A DNA stretch of 64,000 nucleotides from the IMG/VR virus record IMGVR_UViG_3300033153_007973, positions 170,009-234,008 of that record. The stretch is one strand, 5' to 3'. Under the pieces are notes generated by a model. The model saw nothing but the letters and a program-made list of their open reading frames with translations. It was not told the origin of the DNA and ran no database searches. Numbering within the stretch: the first letter of the stretch is position 1; each line of letters begins with the position of its first letter. The translations under genes and the position numbers were made by a program. Of the stretch, positions 17,386 through 40,846 are shown in pieces.

Positions 17386-17754
17386 TTATAATAGATTCTT
17401 TGCTAACGGCTCATCTACCTTTGGATGAATCTGAGAAGCCACTTCTCTCTGTTCCATTTCATGCATGATATTATGTATATTATGTTCTTCCCGGACTCTC
17501 TCATCAATGAGCTTCCAGACCTTACGTACCACCCCAAAGTGGATATACTGTCTGGATGCATATGTTGGCGCCGGAGTATCGAAGCCAACTACATACCTTC
17601 TAGCGAGGTCTTTCAGATTCATCCTTGTCATCATATAGGAATAGACAAAGAGGAAATCTATGTCACTAACTCGCCCTTCTTTATGAAGCTCCACCAATGC
17701 CTCTGAGAAGAGGTCCATCAACTCTTGTGGATATTTCTGATATCTTTCGAACAT
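17386..17754 (-). CDS. sigma70 region-4-like HTH protein
   Basis: 'MNLKDLARRY...SRQYIH...VRKVWKL' fits the LxELA..SRQxI HTH pattern; start uncertain. Confidence 0.45.
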   Translation of the reverse strand: MFERYQKYPQELMDLFSEALVELHKEGRVSDIDFLFVYSYMMTRMNLKDLARRYVVGFDTPAPTYASRQYIHFGVVRKVWKLIDERVREEHNIHNIMHEMEQREVASQIHPKVDEPLAKNLL

Positions 17755-18511
17755 CGTTCTTTCCCGTTGTTCCTCTTCGTTCACATTCTCCTCTGCAAGG
17801 ACAATTCCTGCAGCGTCTCGTTGCATTCTTCCCCAATATCCCATAGGTCATCTGCCTCCCTAATCTGTGGATGTTTTGTTTGCATTCGTCTATGTACTCT
17901 GGCGTGAGATCCAGCCTATATACAGTTTTCCTGAAAGCAGAAATAACGTCTACTAAGACTGGATTCGTCGACATGAGATCGGATGCGAGGCAGACTGTCC
18001 CCATTACTCGTGGGTTATACAGTAACCATACCTTGCTTGGTTCCCTGTCAGGATCTAAATGGTAAATTATTAAGCGAAGGCCAAACTTTGGACTGGAACT
18101 CGAGGTCTCACTAGTCTTAACCTCAGACAACATAAGGTCAATATTGAGATTGATTGGGTTCCCGTCACCTACGTATAGTACAGGGAGATTAAAACCAGCT
18201 ACTCTTTTTCTGGATATTCCACCAGTATGAATAGCTTTCCCTACACAAAATGAAAGGTTATCGACGGCACGGTAGGCCTTATTGATGAGTTGCTCATCAA
18301 AGCGCTTTAAGAGCGCTCTGAGAAGCTTTTTGAGGAGGGGTAAAGAGTATTCTCTACGTTTAACTTGGAGGGTCATGTACCTAGCCATAGCGAAAACGAC
18401 CGAACGTTCATACACTACTTCAGCAACTCTTGTATCACCGTTCTCAGCGATATCAGCGTAGGTAGGGCACAGCATAAACCACTGTGCATATCTTGTTGAC
18501 TGTATATCCAT
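17681..18511 (-). CDS. degenerate PD-(D/E)XK/Cas4-like nuclease homolog
   Basis: N-terminal 'FMLCP' and C-terminal 'CRNCPCRGEC' give the 1+3 Cys arrangement; catalytic motif not recognisable. Confidence 0.45.
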   Translation of the reverse strand: MDIQSTRYAQWFMLCPTYADIAENGDTRVAEVVYERSVVFAMARYMTLQVKRREYSLPLLKKLLRALLKRFDEQLINKAYRAVDNLSFCVGKAIHTGGISRKRVAGFNLPVLYVGDGNPINLNIDLMLSEVKTSETSSSSPKFGLRLIIYHLDPDREPSKVWLLYNPRVMGTVCLASDLMSTNPVLVDVISAFRKTVYRLDLTPEYIDECKQNIHRLGRQMTYGILGKNATRRCRNCPCRGECERRGTTGKNDVRKISEISTRVDGPLLRGIGGAS

Positions 18512-18514
18512 TAT

Positions 18515-18544
18515 AAAAAGCAGGTCAAGGGAGTGGCTACCTGC
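18515..18544 (-). terminator. intrinsic terminator-like hairpin closing the RNA region
   Basis: Minus strand GCAGGT-13 nt loop-ACCTGC followed by TTTTT. Confidence 0.55.
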
Positions 18545-18681
18545 GTCGCCCTAGTAGATATCATGCTCGAACCAGTTCCGCCCCTATTTACGGAGATCCG
18601 GGAATGCCAGTTGATTTACTTAATTATCGGAGGACAACTGACTCTATTACCGAGCTGCTTTTCCAGCATGGACCCTCCGCT

Positions 18682-18833
18682 AGGCACAACCAGGGATTCG
18701 AACCCTGGACATCGCATGACATGTAAAACATGTAACATGCATTCTGAAGCGCACTGACGCACCCCGTTATAGGGTACCGTGCTCACAAGTACGTCTACTT
18801 GTGTCCCGCATCTGCCCTTTCTGCTACCGTACC
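18682..18833 (-). ncRNA. tRNA-like RNA with a ~90-nt three-hairpin insert replacing the anticodon arm
   Basis: GGTACGG/TTGTGCC acceptor; U8A9; D arm GCA..TGC with GG; T arm CCAGGG-TTCGAAT-CCCTGG; no CCA encoded. Confidence 0.6.
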
Positions 18834-18853
18834 TAGAAAATCTATTTCTCCTT

Positions 18854-19381
18854 CTATCCTTCATCCTTCTTGTCTCTCTTTGGACCACATGCCTTAAAGA
18901 GCTTTAACTCTTCCTTGGAGAGATCTTCGAACCATGGGCTTTGTGGTCTCATGCCCCTCTTCCTGCAAGCCCAGAGTATAGTACCATAAGCCTTAGATAA
19001 TTCAACGCACTCTTGTAGACCTTTTATCTCTTCCGGCTTGATCTCTTCCGAGTCTGCACATGCCCACCAAAATACATCGTTGCAATTTACGTATAGCTTG
19101 ATGGTTTCATCTGCGTCAATGTGTATCCAATCCTTTAAAAGAGCGTCCTCGATTTCAGTTCGATATTGATGCTTCCTGATAAAGTCTGCTATCTGACTCG
19201 CCTTCTTCGCAATCCCCATTATTGCTTCGTTATGTCCTTCCATTCTTTCTGTCCGTTTTTCGTACGGATTCTTTCCGCCAGTTACAGCTGCTGCATATAT
19301 ACCAACATCATCTATCGCTAGGCGATATGGGAGATTTTCAATAGCTGCTTCTCTATAGTCTACTTCAATCTTCTTCATCAT
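18854..19381 (-). CDS. hypothetical phage protein
   Basis: SD AGGAAG before ATG ATG; protein-like composition. Confidence 0.55.
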   Translation of the reverse strand: MMKKIEVDYREAAIENLPYRLAIDDVGIYAAAVTGGKNPYEKRTERMEGHNEAIMGIAKKASQIADFIRKHQYRTEIEDALLKDWIHIDADETIKLYVNCNDVFWWACADSEEIKPEEIKGLQECVELSKAYGTILWACRKRGMRPQSPWFEDLSKEELKLFKACGPKRDKKDEG

Positions 19382-21973: not shown

Positions 21974-23436
21974 CCTGCATATCCTCTTTCATAGTAATAT
22001 GGTGAGCGCCATTCTGATATCTCCATCCTCTTCTTGTGCCACTTATACTCCAGACTTCTGCACTTATCATAGATATGTCTGAGATATCCGGGAAGGAACT
22101 TCTTTCCGATTCTTAGCTTGTAAATTATGTTCATTTCTTGTTTTATCTTGTCGATATTATTAACTGTATTATTTGTTTCACATCCTACCACCTTGGTTTC
22201 TCTTAACATCACAGCTGATTCTATAATCGAACCGATTAAAGCCATCATGTATACATTGTCTGCATAGTTAAAGTATCTGGTATCTGGACATATGAAACCA
22301 ACACAATGGCTGCACTTCGCCTGTTTTTTGGCTTCCTTTGAGTCATGGAGAAATGATACATCATTACTCGCATATTCTTTAACTAATCTTTCCATTGATG
22401 GTAAAGCAGCACCAAATATCCCAGTTGGTAGGATAACAATTGGAAAGAATGGTCTTGGTAAAATTGAACCCATTGCTAACATTCTGCGTGAGAACATCTC
22501 TGCCTCATCTGATGATCTATACCCACTGTCAGGCTTTGGAGGTCTATCGATTATCTGTCTTGTGTCTCTAGCAATATGCTTACAGTATGGAACTTTATAT
22601 ATCCATGATGGTATGGTTTGATGGTCTATCTCCTTGTTTGAGAGTGTGTGTTGCAATGTGTCCAGATTTGATAGAAGAATCGAGTTCCGACTGCTGTTAG
22701 GTTGACATACAAAATCGACCTTGGGAAAGAATCCTTTGTTTACTGCAGTTACAATTGCTTGACCTGCACTAGTGACCATTGCTTCACATACTGTGCTAAT
22801 CTTTCTATTATATCGTGTTGGATCTAGCAGTGATGTTATTAAAGCTTCTTGCATATGTTTCTTTTCGTGTGCAATGAAGAATCCAGAAAGACATTTCTTA
22901 AAGTTAGGCCTCCAGTCGCTTTGTAACCTGCTTGGTAAGTATGAAGATGCAATATTCTCCTCGTGTGTATCGATAAAGCTGCTATCTCCTGTAGTAAATC
23001 GTCTGTATCTTATGCCTCGATTACCTTGTCTCACGGGGTACTGGATTGACAAAGACTGAGATGACATCATTATTCCATGTAGGTGATCTTGTGTGTATTG
23101 TGATGATACTTGGTGAACACTATCTGATACATGAGTTCTCATTGGTCTCATAATGGGTATGATTCTGGAGCTATCTGCCAAGTTATTCATTTCTTCTGTA
23201 TTATTTGCAGCGAATTCACAGAGTCTTTGTCGATCTACAGTGCCGAAATCATTTGCTTCTATGGGAGCGATAGATCGAAATGTATTATATCCATGATATA
23301 GATATGATCGAAGTGTAGATTCTATATTACATCTTGATTGATTATACGTTGCTAACTCAAGAACTCGTACATCCTCCGTCGTGTGTTCTTCTCTTGGAGT
23401 AGCAAGAAGTGGTATAGAAACTGTTTTTATCTTCAT
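21970..23436 (-). CDS. hypothetical protein (488 aa)
   Basis: Long ORF coupled by ATGA overlaps on both sides; no motif recognised. Confidence 0.6.
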   Translation of the reverse strand: MKIKTVSIPLLATPREEHTTEDVRVLELATYNQSRCNIESTLRSYLYHGYNTFRSIAPIEANDFGTVDRQRLCEFAANNTEEMNNLADSSRIIPIMRPMRTHVSDSVHQVSSQYTQDHLHGIMMSSQSLSIQYPVRQGNRGIRYRRFTTGDSSFIDTHEENIASSYLPSRLQSDWRPNFKKCLSGFFIAHEKKHMQEALITSLLDPTRYNRKISTVCEAMVTSAGQAIVTAVNKGFFPKVDFVCQPNSSRNSILLSNLDTLQHTLSNKEIDHQTIPSWIYKVPYCKHIARDTRQIIDRPPKPDSGYRSSDEAEMFSRRMLAMGSILPRPFFPIVILPTGIFGAALPSMERLVKEYASNDVSFLHDSKEAKKQAKCSHCVGFICPDTRYFNYADNVYMMALIGSIIESAVMLRETKVVGCETNNTVNNIDKIKQEMNIIYKLRIGKKFLPGYLRHIYDKCRSLEYKWHKKRMEISEWRSPYYYERGYAG

Positions 23437-26400
23437 GTAGAACCTCTCTCATCTGCCTTCCTGATAACCAACTGTAGGAAGTCTCTGTATGATATGTGTT
23501 TTGTCTCCTCGACTGATACGTCTTTGTCTTTCAGATATTTGTCGATCGTCTTTCTCTTTGAGGAGATAACTTCGAATTTATATTGATCAATCATAAACCT
23601 GTTGAATATTACATAGACCTCTGGGTTACCTGTCTGATCGGGCCTCAGGATTCTTCCGATAGCTTGTTCATAGAACGCTGGTGACCATGGAATATCTGAC
23701 ATGATAACAACATCAGCTTGTTCCAAATTGAAGCTCTTTCCAAGGATTCCTATGTTACCAACAGCTACACTATTTGGAGTCTTTCTGAAGTTCTCGATGA
23801 CTTTATATCTTGCTGAAGGTGTCATCTTATTTGAAAGCAAGAAAGTACTCGCTCCACTGTTCTTGAATAGATTACTAAGATCTATACTGGCTTCTGTGAA
23901 TCCTGTAAAGACTAGTACACTTCTTCCCTCACTGAGTTTGTCAATGACCAGGTCTCTTGTTACTAATTGCTTAGCTGTTGGTGTGTTCTGCCATGTTGGA
24001 TCAAGAAGTTTTGGACACTCAGAGATTTTCATCATGGCGATTAGTCGTGCTAAGCTTTTGCTTTCATCTCTGACGAATTCTCTTGAGCCATCTAGAATAG
24101 ACAGATATTGTTCGAACTGTGTATTGTTTGGTTCCGCGACAACTTTCATCTCTTTCACATTGAAACGAAACATATCGTTCTTTACCAATCCTTCATTCTC
24201 TCTGGCGACCTTGACAACCAAGTTTCGGACATAGTCCTTTGTGAATTCAGGATCTGAGCTCATCTTATCATTGATTTTTGCAAGCCTCATATTTGTTGTT
24301 GATATATTATGAACAATCTTGTATGTTGGTTCTCCCTTTTTGTCCTCTCCGAGCCTGGCTACTACCTTCTTATTTTTCCGTCTGATCTCTGTTCCTATGT
24401 GGGATATCGGAGTGGCATCGACCTTGGATACACAGCTCTTGCTACCATATCCGATCACTGCATATGTAGCTAGCTCAGCCATCTTATTAGTAATGACTGT
24501 ACCACTCATGAACATGGAGCGAGCTGGTCTTAGTCTGATCGCTGACTTTGACTTCAAAGATGTAGGAGATTTAACGTTTTGACAATTTTTGACGAGTAAT
24601 CCGTTAGCTACATAGTTGTGATTATCTCCTACGTCGATGTTGAACACTCTTTGATCTTGCTGAGGACTGTATCCAGATTTTCCATTACTTCTTTGTTCCA
24701 GAATCGTAACATTTTCCACCCTAGCATAAGCAATACGGATTCTTTCCTTTTGTCGAGATACTTCCATTTCTTTGTCTTGTGAGATTCTCCGTCTACTTCG
24801 ATTGCTATCTTCTTGTCGGGAATTGCTAGGTCGACTGCATACTTTGTCGGAAGACAGAGATCTGGTCTCTTCCTTCTGAGATTCTTTAGACCGATCTGAA
24901 ATTCCATTGGGTATCCTGTTGCTTTGTGAAGCTTCAGTTGTGGCACAGTTAACTTCCCGTTTCCTCCTCTGGAGAGAAACGTGGGGTTCTTTTTCCATCT
25001 CTTCTTTGTGCCAGCAATAGCTTTCCTCTGAAATTCTGGGTCTGCGTTCATTCGTTTCATTCGTTCTGATTGTGCTTTGAATCCAGTCTTTCGTAGAGCA
25101 GCAGTTGCTTTCTTCTTGTATTTCTTTTGTATAATGTGGAATCTCTTTTGTTGTTTTGGTTGACTGCATCGCCATTTTGCAGAACATTGCTTTCCGCAGA
25201 ATCGTGTGTTCTTGCTCTTTCTCGTTAGTCCGGTACCTAGGCTGAAGTCTTTCCCACACCACTTGCAGGTTTTTGTTATCATCTTTACACGGCGAAGAAT
25301 TCCTGCACACTTCGTACTGCAGCATTTTTGTTGTCTTGTTGATTTTGGTCTGTAATATGTGAACGTTGTTCCACATGAAGCACACTGTCTCGTTTCGTAG
25401 TTCCTTTGCCTTGACATAGCCTTTCTCCTTTGTCCAGATTTTATGGTCTGGAGTACATATGATGCTATGTCCATTATTATATTCTACTTTGACGAGGTTG
25501 TCAACATATGGCTTATGAAAATAATGTACTACGGGTTTGTATTCCCAGTTGTTAGTTTCTAAGTTCTTTGATAATGCGAGTACATCTTCTCTGTTCGTGA
25601 CAATGTCTCCAATCTTTCTTAGCCCTTTGTTTGTCATAATTTCAGTGTCATATGTGAAACACTCATCAAAGATTACCAGATCAAATAGTCCTCGTAGATC
25701 ATCACCTGTAGTATGTATCTTGTATAGGCTCTTCTGTTTCTTATCTTCATTGGACCGTCGACTCTTTATCTTTGTCTCAGCACCTAAGATCGAGTACCCG
25801 ATTAAGGTTATGGGTGTGGCATTTTCCTTGGCGAGTGGGATGTCTGTCAGCTTCTTGATGATGAAAGGTTTCTCCATCTTCAGTTTATCCATCTCTCTTA
25901 TGAATTCATTGAGAGCACCGGGTTCTACGCATACTAGTGTCCTCTTCACACCGAGTGCAAGATGGAGTCCGATTGCGATCCGAGTTTTGCCTAGGCCTAC
26001 ATCACATTGTAGTACTGAAGCCTTCTTTCTCATGGCCATAGCAATTGAATACTTCTGATGCCACTGCAGCTCTAGCTTGTGTATCTTGTTGATCTTTTCG
26101 ATCTGTCCCATGTGTGTTCTGAACAAGTCATCTTTCTCTACTTGAGCAGGTGGAGGGGACATCCATTTCTTGATGTTCCTTACTGCTTTAATAATAGTAG
26201 TCTTAGTGCTATCGTCAACGTCGAAGCCTTCTTTTTCCAAGATTCCTAGTAATAGCTCAATTCTCAGAACGGAGCCCTCAAACTTTGCTAGCTCTATTTC
26301 GAATTCATATGCAACAATGTTCACATCACATGCATCTAGTCTTTTGCGAGTGTTTCGAGCACTATTAGATTCAGGATCATCTTCCTCTGTTGTACCTTGA

Positions 26401-27185
26401 ATATTTACTGGATCAATATCTGATAGGATATGATCATTTACGACCGCAGGAAGACCATAATTGGTGGATCCGTCTAGTGCTTGACTCAATCCCTCGTTTC
26501 TTTGTTGGAATTGGTATCTATATACGTTTCCAATATATCTTCCTTGTCGACCCTCAATTGGAAAGATTCTGTTCTGAACCAAGAGAACAATTGATGATAT
26601 AAGATCCATTGGCAGAGATGTTATCTGTGCATGTTCTCTGGGTAGCCCAGGATGTAGATGTAGATTAAATGGGAATCTGATACGAAGTGTTCGTCCAGAG
26701 ACGATAGAGACTATCTTAGATTCAGCATCTATAGCAGGTTTCTTTGTGAAATATAAATAGTCGATAATCTTTCTGTTCTTGACCAGGACAACTACGCTAT
26801 TAAAAAGCTGCGGACACTTAGTCTTCGTCTTTATGCCCTTCTTAGCAGCTTTGAAATCATCTTCGTTATCGATAATGATGATAGCGTTATTGACCCGTAT
26901 CTTCTGGTCAAGTAGGTTAATCGCATTGACTCTCTCGAAATTAATATGCTTACTGAGAATCATGTCGATTCCATCTGCCGATTTTCCCACAAGGACTAGA
27001 TGATATTTTCTTGATGCGGGACCCTTAGCTTTTCGTGTAAATCCAAGATCAGTTAGATAGCTTGTAAGAGTATCCTCTTCTCGTTTAGCTTTGAGATGTT
27101 CAAGGTTATCATCAAACTCTTTAATGTCACTATCTACAGACGCTAACAGATCGTCTACAGATATAAGATCTAGATCATCTGGCAT
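23433..27185 (-). CDS. SNF2-family helicase containing one intein
   Basis: Motif I 'DVGLGKT'; motif II 'VIFDE|CQ' split by the intein; 'MSGTVITN'; C-terminal 'KSFNLEQADVVI...QAIGRILRPDQ'. Confidence 0.9.
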   Translation of the reverse strand: MPDDLDLISVDDLLASVDSDIKEFDDNLEHLKAKREEDTLTSYLTDLGFTRKAKGPASRKYHLVLVGKSADGIDMILSKHINFERVNAINLLDQKIRVNNAIIIIDNEDDFKAAKKGIKTKTKCPQLFNSVVVLVKNRKIIDYLYFTKKPAIDAESKIVSIVSGRTLRIRFPFNLHLHPGLPREHAQITSLPMDLISSIVLLVQNRIFPIEGRQGRYIGNVYRYQFQQRNEGLSQALDGSTNYGLPAVVNDHILSDIDPVNIQGTTEEDDPESNSARNTRKRLDACDVNIVAYEFEIELAKFEGSVLRIELLLGILEKEGFDVDDSTKTTIIKAVRNIKKWMSPPPAQVEKDDLFRTHMGQIEKINKIHKLELQWHQKYSIAMAMRKKASVLQCDVGLGKTRIAIGLHLALGVKRTLVCVEPGALNEFIREMDKLKMEKPFIIKKLTDIPLAKENATPITLIGYSILGAETKIKSRRSNEDKKQKSLYKIHTTGDDLRGLFDLVIFDECFTYDTEIMTNKGLRKIGDIVTNREDVLALSKNLETNNWEYKPVVHYFHKPYVDNLVKVEYNNGHSIICTPDHKIWTKEKGYVKAKELRNETVCFMWNNVHILQTKINKTTKMLQYEVCRNSSPCKDDNKNLQVVWERLQPRYRTNEKEQEHTILRKAMFCKMAMQSTKTTKEIPHYTKEIQEESNCCSTKDWIQSTIRTNETNERRPRISEESYCWHKEEMEKEPHVSLQRRKREVNCATTEASQSNRIPNGISDRSKESQKEETRSLSSDKVCSRPSNSRQEDSNRSRRRISQDKEMEVSRQKERIRIAYARVENVTILEQRSNGKSGYSPQQDQRVFNIDVGDNHNYVANGLLVKNCQNVKSPTSLKSKSAIRLRPARSMFMSGTVITNKMAELATYAVIGYGSKSCVSKVDATPISHIGTEIRRKNKKVVARLGEDKKGEPTYKIVHNISTTNMRLAKINDKMSSDPEFTKDYVRNLVVKVARENEGLVKNDMFRFNVKEMKVVAEPNNTQFEQYLSILDGSREFVRDESKSLARLIAMMKISECPKLLDPTWQNTPTAKQLVTRDLVIDKLSEGRSVLVFTGFTEASIDLSNLFKNSGASTFLLSNKMTPSARYKVIENFRKTPNSVAVGNIGILGKSFNLEQADVVIMSDIPWSPAFYEQAIGRILRPDQTGNPEVYVIFNRFMIDQYKFEVISSKRKTIDKYLKDKDVSVEETKHISYRDFLQLVIRKADERGST
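24585..25661 (-). mobile_element. intein (359 aa) inserted at DE^CQ of helicase motif II
   Basis: Block A 'CFTYDTEIMT..G..KIGDI'; block B 'ICTPDHKI'; block F 'VFNIDV..NHNYVANG'; block G 'LVKN' followed by Cys+1. Confidence 0.92.
24629..25417 (-). CDS. Vsr/DUF559-like (EDxHD-type) endonuclease with Zn-finger repeats, nested in the +1 frame of the intein
   Basis: SD AAGGAG 7 nt before ATG 25417; 'CASC..CCSTKC', 'CKWC..FCGKQC'; 'YAVDLAI...IAIEVDGESH...DKRKESVLLMLGWKMLRFWN'. Confidence 0.85.
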   Translation of the reverse strand: MSRQRNYETRQCASCGTTFTYYRPKSTRQQKCCSTKCAGILRRVKMITKTCKWCGKDFSLGTGLTRKSKNTRFCGKQCSAKWRCSQPKQQKRFHIIQKKYKKKATAALRKTGFKAQSERMKRMNADPEFQRKAIAGTKKRWKKNPTFLSRGGNGKLTVPQLKLHKATGYPMEFQIGLKNLRRKRPDLCLPTKYAVDLAIPDKKIAIEVDGESHKTKKWKYLDKRKESVLLMLGWKMLRFWNKEVMENLDTVLSKIKECSTST

Positions 27186-30928: not shown

Positions 30929-32011
30929 TTAGTTGAGTTTGGTTTCGTCTTGCCTATGTAGGCTTCGCCATTTGAACTTGGCGAGTTCTCTTGGGTCTCT
31001 TATCTTGAAGTAGATGCTTTCTACATCTGCATCTTGGAAAAGCATCTTCTCTGTTTGTGCCCTTTCACTTTCGAGCAATGTAATATCTTCTTCAAGTTTT
31101 ATATATTCTGCTTTTTCTGTTTCATGAAGACCTGATTTCTTCATGAATTCTTTTGCGAGTGAGAACTCTCTTCCCCATCGTGATATTTCTTCAAGATCTT
31201 TTGGTGCCATTACTACGTCTACGTTCTTGTCCATACATGCGAGAATCTTGCGGATCTCTATTCCGGAATGTTTCTTGTATTCTGTGAATAAATGTTTTCC
31301 ATATGGTACAGTAAGTGTTCGAGTGGCTACATTGGCTTTGTACGATGCATAATGTTCCCAGAAGATTTGGTTGCCATTTGATGGTATCATCTCCAATGCT
31401 AGTACTTCTGTGTCGGTAATCCTGGATATTCTCATAGCGATTGCATCAAGAAGTTCAAATGATATGACTGGAATAAGTGGGTTCAAGCATAGATTGATAA
31501 TCCATGATTTGTCATGGATGACTTGTTGTTTCATGTCATGATCAAGACGCTTAACTTCTTCACTATGATCTTCTATTCTTTCTAGAAACGGTTTCTTTCT
31601 GGATGTGTCTTTACCAGATTGATCATATGTGATATCGATTTTATGAATGTCTAGTATGCCATATCTCTTGTCAGCTTTGGATGGATCCTCATCTGGACGA
31701 CCTAGTTTTGGCATCTCAATGCTTGTAATCTTTCCATCGTTAAGATTTTGTTGGAATGCAGGTGTCTTTCCTTGTTCTAGATCTTTTTTCATGTCTTTAA
31801 GATACTGGCGGAACTCAGTTCTAATAGCCATAATGTATCTTTTAACATTGTCTTGAGTGGTTCTTCCTCTGAACTCATCATATGAAACTCGTTTAATATG
31901 TACTTCAGCATTTATCGCACTGATTACAGCTTCTTTTACAGTGTCAATATTAATGTGTTTCTCTGGAATTCTAATAAGCTTGAATTCTGTTGGGCCCTTA
32001 CGTCGTCTCAA
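30929..32011 (-). CDS. hypothetical protein (360 aa)
   Basis: Long ORF in the operon; no motif recognised. Confidence 0.6.
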   Translation of the reverse strand: MRRRKGPTEFKLIRIPEKHINIDTVKEAVISAINAEVHIKRVSYDEFRGRTTQDNVKRYIMAIRTEFRQYLKDMKKDLEQGKTPAFQQNLNDGKITSIEMPKLGRPDEDPSKADKRYGILDIHKIDITYDQSGKDTSRKKPFLERIEDHSEEVKRLDHDMKQQVIHDKSWIINLCLNPLIPVISFELLDAIAMRISRITDTEVLALEMIPSNGNQIFWEHYASYKANVATRTLTVPYGKHLFTEYKKHSGIEIRKILACMDKNVDVVMAPKDLEEISRWGREFSLAKEFMKKSGLHETEKAEYIKLEEDITLLESERAQTEKMLFQDADVESIYFKIRDPRELAKFKWRSLHRQDETKLN

Positions 32012-40494: not shown

Positions 40495-40846
40495 GGTGGA
40501 GTAGGTGGGACTCGAACCCACGGCGACTTTTCGCTGGTTCCCGCAAGGGTACTCTAAGCGTACTCACCCTGAGTGGCGCCTAACCCAATAGCTACCCCTG
40601 AGACCCCATAGAGAGCGCCGTCCGACTGTAAGCCAGACAGTCCTCTAATCCTTCTCAGAATCGCTTGGATCTAGGACGATCACGGAGATCCCTCGGCTTT
40701 CGCCATCTTCCTTATACGGGCGCAGGTCATAGACCAAACACGGGCCGAAGCCACTATAATTCCGTGGAAGTGGGATATTCCTGACCTTCCTTGTCATACA
40801 CCATCGAGGCGGGAGGAAAAGTTCTCTTCCGCTGAGATACTACTCC
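40495..40846 (-). ncRNA. tRNA-shelled, tmRNA-like RNA (352 nt)
   Basis: Acceptor GGAGTAG/CTACTCC, A73, CC; D arm TCTC-AGCGGAA-GAGA; stems CTTTTC/GAAAAG and TCCCGC/GCGGGA; T arm GTGGG-TTCGAGT-CCCAC; two H-type pseudoknots inside. Confidence 0.75.

Follow-up and report, generated by a model that had tools for sequence, protein, structure and literature searches.

Large phages carry many transfer RNA (tRNA) genes, and the odd ones among these are both missed and mislabelled by standard tools. Lak megaphages and other huge phages, for example, encode oversized tRNA genes with unclassified 'enigmatic introns' that escape bacterial tRNA finders (bioRxiv 10.1101/356790). The present analysis concerns a tRNA-like gene in a 64,000-nt stretch of IMG/VR virus record IMGVR_UViG_3300033153_007973, referred to here as the window, which covers bases 170009-234008 of the genome of a marine phage, 234,008 bp long and bounded by direct terminal repeats. 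The element lies at window positions 18836..18680 on the minus strand, is about 150 nt long, and sits inside a 342-nt gap in a long block of minus-strand genes. It combines the acceptor, D arm and T arm of a tRNA, collectively its shell, with an insert of roughly 95 nt in the position of the anticodon arm. We tentatively read it, with a probability of about 0.4, as a non-decoding, tRNA-shaped RNA that is kept for its shell and serves as a mimic or decoy, possibly also as a processing point.

Several other described RNAs offer points of comparison. Ponchon and Dardel are said to have engineered 'tRNA scaffolds' for use in bacteria, in which a helix-closed RNA replaces the anticodon stem-loop of an intact tRNA; to our knowledge, no natural phage counterpart of such a scaffold has been shown. 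In YrlA RNAs, the ends of the molecule lie at the anticodon side. YrlA accompanies a Ro/Rsr gene (PMC4201824). An acceptor/T stack of 13 bp is otherwise known from selenocysteine tRNA (tRNA-Sec) only, the allo-tRNAs having 12-bp branches (8/4 or 9/3) (PMC5389517).

The tRNA-like shell

RNA position n of the element corresponds to window coordinate 18834 - n. The shell is composed of the following parts:

18834..18836, minus strand: 5' leader CUA, whose pairing with UAG (18680-18682) lengthens the acceptor helix to 10 bp and is part of the minimum-energy fold
18827..18833, minus strand: acceptor 5' strand GGUACGG (RNA 1-7), 7/7 paired with 18683-18689 (G-C, G-C, U·G, A-U, C-G, G·U, G·U)
18808..18826, minus strand: U8, A9 and a class-II (Leu-type) D arm, GCA-GAAAGGGCAGA-UGC, the D arm itself occupying 18824-18808
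18690..18708, minus strand: T arm CCAGGG-UUCGAAU-CCCUGG, with a 6-bp stem and a consensus T loop
18683..18689, minus strand: acceptor 3' strand UUGUGCC, read from the sequence
18680..18682, minus strand: discriminator U73, then AG, without CCA, read from the sequence

An earlier note on this DNA, made from its letters alone, had described an acceptor GGUACGG/UUGUGCC extendable to 10 bp, a type II-like D arm and the T arm listed above. The acceptor is borne out, with three of its seven pairs being G·U, none a mismatch, and CUA/UAG supplying the extension, and both arms were likewise read on the minus strand, all six pairs of the T stem being formed. U8, A14, G18G19 of the D loop and the T-loop consensus UUCRANY, which are canonical tRNA features, are all present in the element. 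The stacking of the two helices, however, departs from the canonical arrangement: 8 nt separate a 5-bp T stem from the discriminator, whereas a canonical tRNA has 7 nt and a 12-bp branch (7 + 5), so that the acceptor/T stack reaches 13 bp, whether this is counted as 7+6 or as 8+5. The discriminator differs as well, being U73 in the element but A73 in the leucine tRNAs of the phage, in a second shell of the same genome (at genome position 64289) and in a shell starting at position 293 of the related contig L010, both of which are described below. A73 is an identity element for the leucyl-tRNA synthetase LeuRS. The absence of an encoded CCA, also pointed out in the earlier note, is real and yet uninformative, because none of the 31 canonical tRNA genes of the phage (0/31) encodes a CCA.

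Leucine tRNA ancestry

The shell carries the marks of one particular tRNA type. Its 11-nt D loop, GAAAGGGCAGA, is identical at 9/11 positions to the D loop of the phage's own tRNA-Leu(UAG), GAACUGGCAGA, and the 3-bp D stem with the U8 preceding it fits class-II leucine tRNAs. The D-arm motif occurs twice in 234 kb, the second copy lying in the shell at genome 64289-64572, compared with 0.025 occurrences expected from shuffles, although this count is not an independent test because the motif was defined after the sequences had been seen. Within the insert, the loop CUUCAGAA of a candidate anticodon hairpin shares six of seven positions, and the motif UUCAGA, with the anticodon loops of phage Leu(CAG) and Leu(GAG). 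When the insert was shuffled, 273 of 3000 versions (9%) gave a comparable match to at least one of the 30 distinct phage loops framed by ARAGORN, so that this likeness to leucine tRNAs is suggestive, not strong. Judged by sequence, the element would be best explained as a diverged paralogue of the phage's class-II tRNA-Leu genes, and the simplest history would be the duplication of a tRNA-Leu gene followed by expansion of its middle. With a loop of 8 nt at best, no normal variable region, a 13-bp stack and U73, it is almost certainly unable to work as a normal decoding tRNA.

That the element merely resembles a tRNA by chance, or represents DNA-level palindromes such as protein-binding sites without any tRNA ancestry, is very improbable. 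We estimate that, with G·U pairs allowed, the chance of finding a 7-nt partner no more than 450 nt from any given T arm is about even, and the region is rich in palindromic hexamers. Such coincidences would nonetheless have to place acceptor, U8/A9, Leu-type D loop (9/11), T arm and acceptor partner in the right order and at the right spacing, and two further shells share the arm type, one being that of a relative at the corresponding genomic position.

Standard tools perceive little of this likeness. ARAGORN with default settings makes no tRNA call in the window, the locus of the element included, and Rfam returns no match at the gathering threshold; at E<=10 it matches the T arm only, with no match to the tRNA family RF00005. 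The Infernal-type check proposed in the earlier note accordingly yields a hit on one arm and no Rfam call of the element. A covariance model built from the three class-II Leu tRNAs of the phage gives the outer shell 2.8 bits and prefers a 19-bit match, an internal 70-nt alignment carried by the T arm.

The insert and its predicted folds

About 95-100 nt lie between the D arm and the T arm, and when folded alone they form a closing helix GGAC/GUCC and three hairpins. The predicted features of this region are as follows:

18784..18803, minus strand: hairpin 1, CACAAGUA-GACG-UACUUGUG, 8 bp with a 4-nt loop, present in every predicted fold
18751..18782, minus strand: hairpin 2, a GCAC/GUGC-closed arm with an inner 7-bp stem GUACCCU/GGGGUGC, from predicted folds
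18714..18740, minus strand: hairpin 3, GCAUG-UU-ACAUGU-UUU-ACAUGU-CAUGC, from predicted folds
18802..18806, minus strand: 5' strand GGACA of the closing helix, formed with its partner at 18707-18711 when the insert is folded alone
18707..18711, minus strand: 3' strand UGUCC of the closing helix, which abuts or overlaps the T stem and leaves no variable region
18737..18754, minus strand: alternative anticodon-like hairpin GUGCG-CUUCAGAA-UGCAU (RNA 80-97), 5 bp with an 8-nt loop, in an isoenergetic fold

The three hairpins that the earlier note had drawn were reproduced exactly by folding the insert alone, at -35.3 kcal/mol (z = -3.0), a stability equalled by one of 200 shuffles; for the whole element, the folding z is -2.6. 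The core of hairpin 3 consists of UUACAUGU in tandem repeat around the palindrome ACAUGU. The outer GCAC/GUGC pairs of hairpin 2 compete with the alternative hairpin at 18737-18754, and the helix GGACA/UGUCC, which had been proposed to close the insert, does form when the insert is folded alone but shares two C's with the 6-bp T stem and therefore competes with T-stem pairs 6 and 5. The D arm does not appear in the unconstrained minimum-energy fold.

The description of the element as anticodon-less holds only in part. No standard 7-nt loop is present, and nowhere in the element were a canonical 5-bp stem, a 7-nt anticodon loop with U33 and a purine at position 37, and a variable region found together. 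The best candidate is the 8-nt loop CUUCAGAA, which is of Leu type and is borne by an isoenergetic hairpin: a cloverleaf-like fold that includes it has -47.9 kcal/mol, compared with -48.6 and -47.5 kcal/mol for the three-hairpin fold. Depending on the fold chosen, the variable region is either absent or about 28 nt long.

A near-copy of the 5' acceptor strand is also found within the insert, GCACGGUA (RNA 52-59) as compared with GUACGGUA (RNA 2-9), or window 18751-18782 as compared with 18825-18833. It could likewise pair with the 3' acceptor strand, from a position 75 nt ahead of the T arm, the corresponding distance being 77 nt in a glycine element elsewhere in the window (see below). This near-copy may be due to chance.

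No second copy of the insert was found in the genome beyond matches to T loops, and a mobile or repeated insert was rejected on this ground. Exact 20-25-mers of shell and insert were found solely in a second assembly of the same phage.

Relatives of the locus

The lineage is thinly sampled, and the source runs of the relatives are marine metagenomes, runs X1-X3 among them with relatives at about 90% identity. In L010, a contig of JGI 3300042086 whose counterpart of the nuclease gene downstream of the element is 59% identical, three T-arm shells occupy positions 293-752 immediately upstream of the nuclease gene, none of which is called by default ARAGORN (0/3). Shell 1 (293-477) has the same D arm as the element, a 6-bp T stem CCGAGG/CCUCGG, A73 and a variable-arm hairpin, and a perfect 6-bp helix GGAGGA/UCCUCC closes its 90-nt insert. 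The middle shell, 73 nt long, has an 8-nt loop and a variable region of 1 nt, and shell 3 again shows a 6-bp T stem, CCGGGG/CCCCGG.

A second relative comes from the marine run X3, in which a 151-nt contig is about 91% identical to the 3' flank of the element (18583-18683) and then runs into the element itself. Its T arm, CCAGGG-UUCAACU-CCUUGG, is fully paired, the single C-to-U change in the stem yielding a G·U pair and the loop keeping the consensus. Its acceptor 3' strand reads UCACUAC, which differs from the UUGUGCC of the element at 5/7 positions, and at the site of the closing helix CCUCC stands in place of UGUCC and is complementary to a GGAGG located behind the D arm in both L010 shell 1 and the shell at genome 64289. 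The four T stems form a compensatory series, with pair 3 being A-U, A-U, G-C and G-C and pair 4 being G-C, G·U, A-U and G-C. The comparison with L010 and X3 indicates that slot, shell type and pairing are conserved, whereas the acceptor sequence and the insert are not. Of the homologue and covariation check put forward in the earlier note, the compensatory T-stem pairs 3 and 4 were obtained, but no homologue spanning the 5' half of a close relative was found.

The shell looks maintained on this evidence, because its 13 pairs are intact, with G·U as the only non-Watson-Crick pairs, because its T loop is a perfect match to the consensus, and because the changes seen in relatives keep the pairing, whereas a nearby T-loop-like stretch has lost its stem. 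This stretch, GGUUCGAGC, lies at 18565-18573 on the minus strand, 110 nt from the element, and is possibly the remnant of a second tRNA-like gene.

The same observations have to be weighed against the main rival explanation, a non-functional relic, in which a duplicated tRNA-Leu gene with insertions and slippage duplications is decaying, its stems being still intact as the event was recent. We consider this a serious possibility, though a doubtful one. The three acceptor G·U pairs, the U73 in place of the A73 of the phage Leu tRNAs and the 8-nt loop are what decay might produce, as is the origin of hairpin 3 as a tandem repeat of a palindrome. Decay would furthermore fit the absence of the element from one relative (L003) and the variability of the region in marine relatives, whose T arms and flanks differ within one sample, as well as the T-loop remnant 110 nt off that has lost its stem and the near-zero scores that standard tRNA models give the element. 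Decay does not readily account for the 13 shell pairs and three extension pairs that are all intact, since neutral change would add mismatches besides G·U, nor for the perfect consensus of the T loop; the changes in the X3 T arm keep pairing, the unusual 6-bp T stem recurs in L010, and the insert folds more stably than 199 of 200 shuffles.

Variation in the spacer before the nuclease gene was also observed within a single sample. At the counterpart of window 18512-18549, run X3 contains at least two spacer variants, the first with a different T arm, GUAGG-UUCGAUU-CCUAC, followed by CGGGGCC and set flush against the nuclease start, the second keeping the terminator-like hairpin of this spacer while its flanks differ on both sides. 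To judge from these variants, tRNA-like cassettes are apparently swapped with particular frequency in this spacer.

Searches for further homologues by way of the relatives of the primase, the nuclease and the upstream gene, and among cultured phages, were mostly without result, as were searches for the 3' flank in metagenome contigs and for the D-arm motif and the X3 T arm in viral contigs. In L003, whose primase is 61% identical, the element is absent and the nuclease gene stands directly behind two small genes. The 183-codon gene upstream of the element has 29 relatives, and in none of the four places where the DNA was read (0/4) is a tRNA-like element found downstream.

Further tRNA-like genes of the phage

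The phage encodes 31 canonical tRNAs that cover all 20 amino acids, their genes being dispersed over the genome. Its tRNA-Tyr, 88 nt long with a long variable arm of the bacterial type, points to a bacterial host. Additional tRNA-like genes were sought with a genome-wide scan for T arms that are intact and lie outside annotated tRNAs, and with ARAGORN run with introns permitted; together these yielded at least four further oversized or armless genes:

genome 64289-64572, plus strand: 284-nt shell with the same Leu-type D arm, from the T-arm scan, with GGAGG after the D arm
genome 59938-59999, minus strand: 62-nt tRNA-like RNA lacking a D arm, its acceptor 8 bp long and its loop GUGGUAU, scoring 25.9 bits with the mascRNA model, below threshold
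genome 70303-70418, plus strand: 116-nt gene with 49 nt where 9 are expected, in the anticodon loop region, passing the Rfam tRNA cut-off at 34 bits
genome about 30990-31030, minus strand: minihelix-like T arm with a 5-bp acceptor
window 40495-40846, minus strand: tRNA-Gly(CCC) in split exons, from intron-permitting ARAGORN, positions 37 and 38 being separated by an insert of 276 nt

The last of these is the other tRNA-like gene of the window, and the claim that both genes share one design did not, in the key respect, survive its inspection. The exons of the Gly element make a clean cloverleaf of canonical tRNA-Gly(CCC) type with an intact anticodon stem and loop, split by the 276 nt, and its discriminator is A73 as opposed to the U73 of the other phage Gly tRNAs. 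The insert contains a further 5' strand, GGGGUAG, whose pairing with the same 3' acceptor strand gives rise to G3·U70. An inner unit of 105 nt reaches 33 bits with the Rfam model of transfer-messenger RNA (tmRNA), below the cut-off of 47, and the last 35 nt of the element, at its 3' end, share 91% identity with the tRNA-Ala of Caulobacter phages that are phiCbK-like.

These genes raise the question of whether the element studied here is an intron-bearing tRNA gene, its insert being removed by self-splicing, or by an unknown endonuclease together with the RtcB ligase of the phage, as has been proposed for the Lak megaphages. At an 80% threshold, ARAGORN does call the element, as a tRNA-Val(UAC) in which positions 31 and 32 are separated by 75 nt, and in its intron-permitting mode it calls L010 293-477 as Leu(CAG) with an 89-nt insert. 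The clean exons of the Gly element, the encoded RtcB and the precedent of huge phages speak in the same direction. We nonetheless regard an intron as improbable. At 75-95 nt, the insert is much shorter than a group I intron, which takes at least some 200 nt, and at E<=10 it matches no intron or ribozyme family of Rfam, for which reasons a group I intron was rejected. Bulge-helix-bulge motifs number 7 as compared with 5.3 expected in shuffles, none being compatible with the tRNA fold, and the phage encodes no splicing-endonuclease domain (PF01974), RtcB not being specific to splicing; an intron of the bulge-helix-bulge type was rejected as well, its motifs being at chance level and no endonuclease being encoded.

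Excision in silico leads to the same view. Six of 1551 single excisions give a default ARAGORN call, with anticodons UUU, UUA or of four bases, and when the insert was shuffled and the shell kept, 89 of 100 controls gave at least one call, with a mean of 26 calls each. Because those 89 shuffled inserts do as well or better, excision calls carry no weight, a caution that extends to the Leu(CAG) call in L010, and any spliced product would keep the 13-bp stack and U73. The earlier description of a tRNA-shaped shell around a structured insert of about 95 nt stands, no tested excision model having restored a credible tRNA, with decay as its rival. As a practical warning, a removable 'intron' that yields a tRNA is no evidence of splicing once a good shell is present.

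Proposed role of the element

The preferred reading of the element as a tRNA-shaped RNA kept for its shell can be set out as a series of steps. After duplication of a tRNA-Leu gene, the middle would have expanded by about 75 nt into three stable hairpins, with the shell retained, including the D-arm GG that docks on the T loop. The element would be transcribed together with the minus-strand replication genes around it, probably excised by host RNase P and 3' trimming as expected for the 31 true tRNA genes, and probably given a CCA by the host enzyme, which would leave a stable RNA of about 150 nt in the shape of a tRNA. No CCA-adding enzyme was found among the genes of the phage. Selection would apparently keep the shell, which is the part seen by tRNA-binding proteins, and let the insert vary among lineages, and the RNA may engage, as decoy or sponge, some tRNA-binding or tRNA-attacking host factor, or else serve as a processing point in the operon transcript.

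The decoy idea, like the T-box or RelA sensing suggested in the earlier note, would draw on indirect evidence from the genomic context, in which several signs of conflict over tRNAs are seen: RtcB, five C33 tRNAs and at least four odd tRNA-like genes. The RtcB RNA ligase is encoded at genome 12881-13909, beside tRNA-Gln, and RtcB-type ligases of jumbo phages have been interpreted as tRNA repair enzymes. The five canonical tRNAs, namely Cys, Thr(UGU), Thr(CGU), Lys(UUU) and Lys(CUU), carry C33 (in the ARAGORN frame) instead of the near-universal U33. Together, the C33 tRNAs and RtcB fit a pressure from host nucleases that cut tRNA anticodon loops.

Processing could, however, be the whole function. 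As an element of messenger RNA punctuation or stability, the shell would be a site for RNase P or 3'-end processing, or a 3' protection of the upstream transcript, and the excised RNA would have no role of its own. The acceptor/T helix and the elbow are what RNase P recognises, the element starts 17 nt past the upstream stop codon and on the same strand as its neighbours, and the tRNA-like RNA at genome 59938-59999 weakly matches the mascRNA model (25.9 bits, below threshold). A minihelix would suffice for such a purpose, though, leaving the Leu-type D arm and the structured insert of 95 nt unexplained, and the leader-trailer pairing that makes a 10-bp helix is atypical of good RNase P substrates, so that we give this explanation little credence.

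Several observations weigh against the reading of the element as a maintained mimic or decoy. The outer shell reaches just the 2.8 bits already mentioned with the Leu covariance model, and the Rfam tRNA model has no match at E<=10. A look for RNA runs found none listed. Decay could also have left the three G·U pairs of the acceptor, and it would fit the origin of hairpin 3 as a tandem repeat. The element is missing from the nearest longer relative, L003, and no homologue was found that spans the whole element, or even the 5' half of a close relative. In X3, the body of the element is less than 80% identical or has been replaced, while the 3' flank is about 91% identical, a combination that fits weak constraint or cassette swapping. 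Finally, the other shells of the genome are biased towards a picture of kept shells because they were found by a search for intact T arms.

A wider reading, which we think unlikely but worth stating, is that the lineage uses tRNA shells as natural scaffolds for structured, lineage-specific RNA modules that replace the anticodon arm, the products acting as small regulatory or decoy RNAs against host defences that target tRNAs. The 'outside' of acceptor, D arm and T arm would then ensure processing, CCA addition and stability, and the exchange of the acceptor strand in X3 would reflect selection on what the shell is recognised by. The locus matters under either outcome for the shells, as this phage has at least five tRNA-shaped genes that are unable to decode normally beside its 31 tRNAs, RtcB and tRNAs with altered loops. 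Functional shells would amount to a 'tRNA scaffold' made by nature rather than in the laboratory, and would add a new kind of participant to the struggle of phages with host defences that cut tRNAs; shells that are relics would record how quickly tRNA genes arise and vanish in jumbo phages.

Neighbouring genes and flanking features

All neighbours of the element are encoded on the same strand. Upstream lie the gene of an 831-residue primase-helicase and then the 183-codon gene of unassigned function, which ends at 18854. Downstream follow the gene of a Cas4-like nuclease, from 18511, and that of a Holliday-junction resolvase. The nuclease (17681-18511, minus strand, 276 residues) resembles Cas4/RecB-type PD-(D/E)XK nucleases in its features and predicted fold, and has a C-terminal cysteine cluster; it has no Pfam match, and the searches brought up no more than two relatives, one of these among 1.8 billion cluster representatives. 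A functional tie between the element and its neighbours was rejected, the primase-helicase and the Cas4-like PD-(D/E)XK nuclease being genes of DNA replication and recombination. Two further features lie between the element and the nuclease gene:

18583..18679, minus strand: 3' flank with GGAGGG, 3 nt, AUG and a 17-codon open frame (18616-18679), about 91% identical in the X3 contig
18515..18544, minus strand: terminator-like hairpin GCAGGU..ACCUGC followed by U5, directly before the nuclease start codon, read from the sequence

The hairpin at 18515..18544, whose loop is 13 nt long, was not called by a consensus terminator scan. The 17-codon frame, which stops one codon earlier in the marine relative, could encode a small leader peptide or merely be conserved RNA. 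An open frame of 90 codons with a GTG start (18616-18888, minus strand) spans both the element and the 3' flank, and its translation is arginine-rich and unlike a protein. Gene callers are likely to report this spurious frame as a hypothetical protein, and thereby to hide the RNA gene. Further along the window, a 1250-residue helicase (23433-27185, minus strand) contains an intein, with Intein_splicing and Hint matches at residues 516-867, between the halves of the helicase.

Comparison with known systems

Among described RNAs with a tRNA-like layout, tmRNA resembles the element in keeping acceptor and T arm while an insert replaces the anticodon arm. It was rejected as an identity for the element, which has U3·G70 and not G3·U70, no tag frame or pseudoknots, a length of about 150 nt and a true D stem, and which matches neither Rfam nor the tmRNA mode of ARAGORN at a 70% threshold. 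tRNA-Sec shares the 13-bp branch, and the loop of the element contains UCA; tRNA-Sec was rejected, as the element has no 6-bp D stem with 4-nt loop, no 7-nt loop of the CUUCAAA type, U73 and not G73, and no match to the Rfam tRNA-Sec model. YrlA and mascRNA-type RNAs are alike in being non-decoding copies of the tRNA elbow and acceptor. mascRNA, however, is a product of eukaryotic 3'-end processing, and an RNA of the YrlA or Y-RNA type was rejected, with no Ro (TROVE) domain in the phage genome and no Rfam match.

Class-II tRNA-Leu itself is alike in its 7-bp acceptor followed by U8, in the 3-bp D stem with an 11-nt loop GAA..GG.AGA, in the consensus T loop and in having no encoded CCA. In contrast to it, the element has some 52 nt of additional hairpin sequence following position 26, a loop of 8 nt, a 6-bp T stem and U73. 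The engineered tRNA scaffolds appear alike in layout, though they are laboratory designs.

The closest precedent is provided by the 'enigmatic intron' tRNAs of the Lak phages, which are likewise oversized tRNA-like genes in phages of more than 200 kb that default tools miss. Eukaryote-mode prediction assigned the Lak genes to named tRNAs, and the inserts of these genes are conserved from one cohort to another (bioRxiv 10.1101/356790). Excision from the present element, in contrast, gives no credible named tRNA, and its insert is without a detectable relative. What is new would thus be a tRNA-like gene of a jumbo phage that is apparently derived from tRNA-Leu and defective in its anticodon, as a variant of the oversized tRNA genes already known from huge phages.

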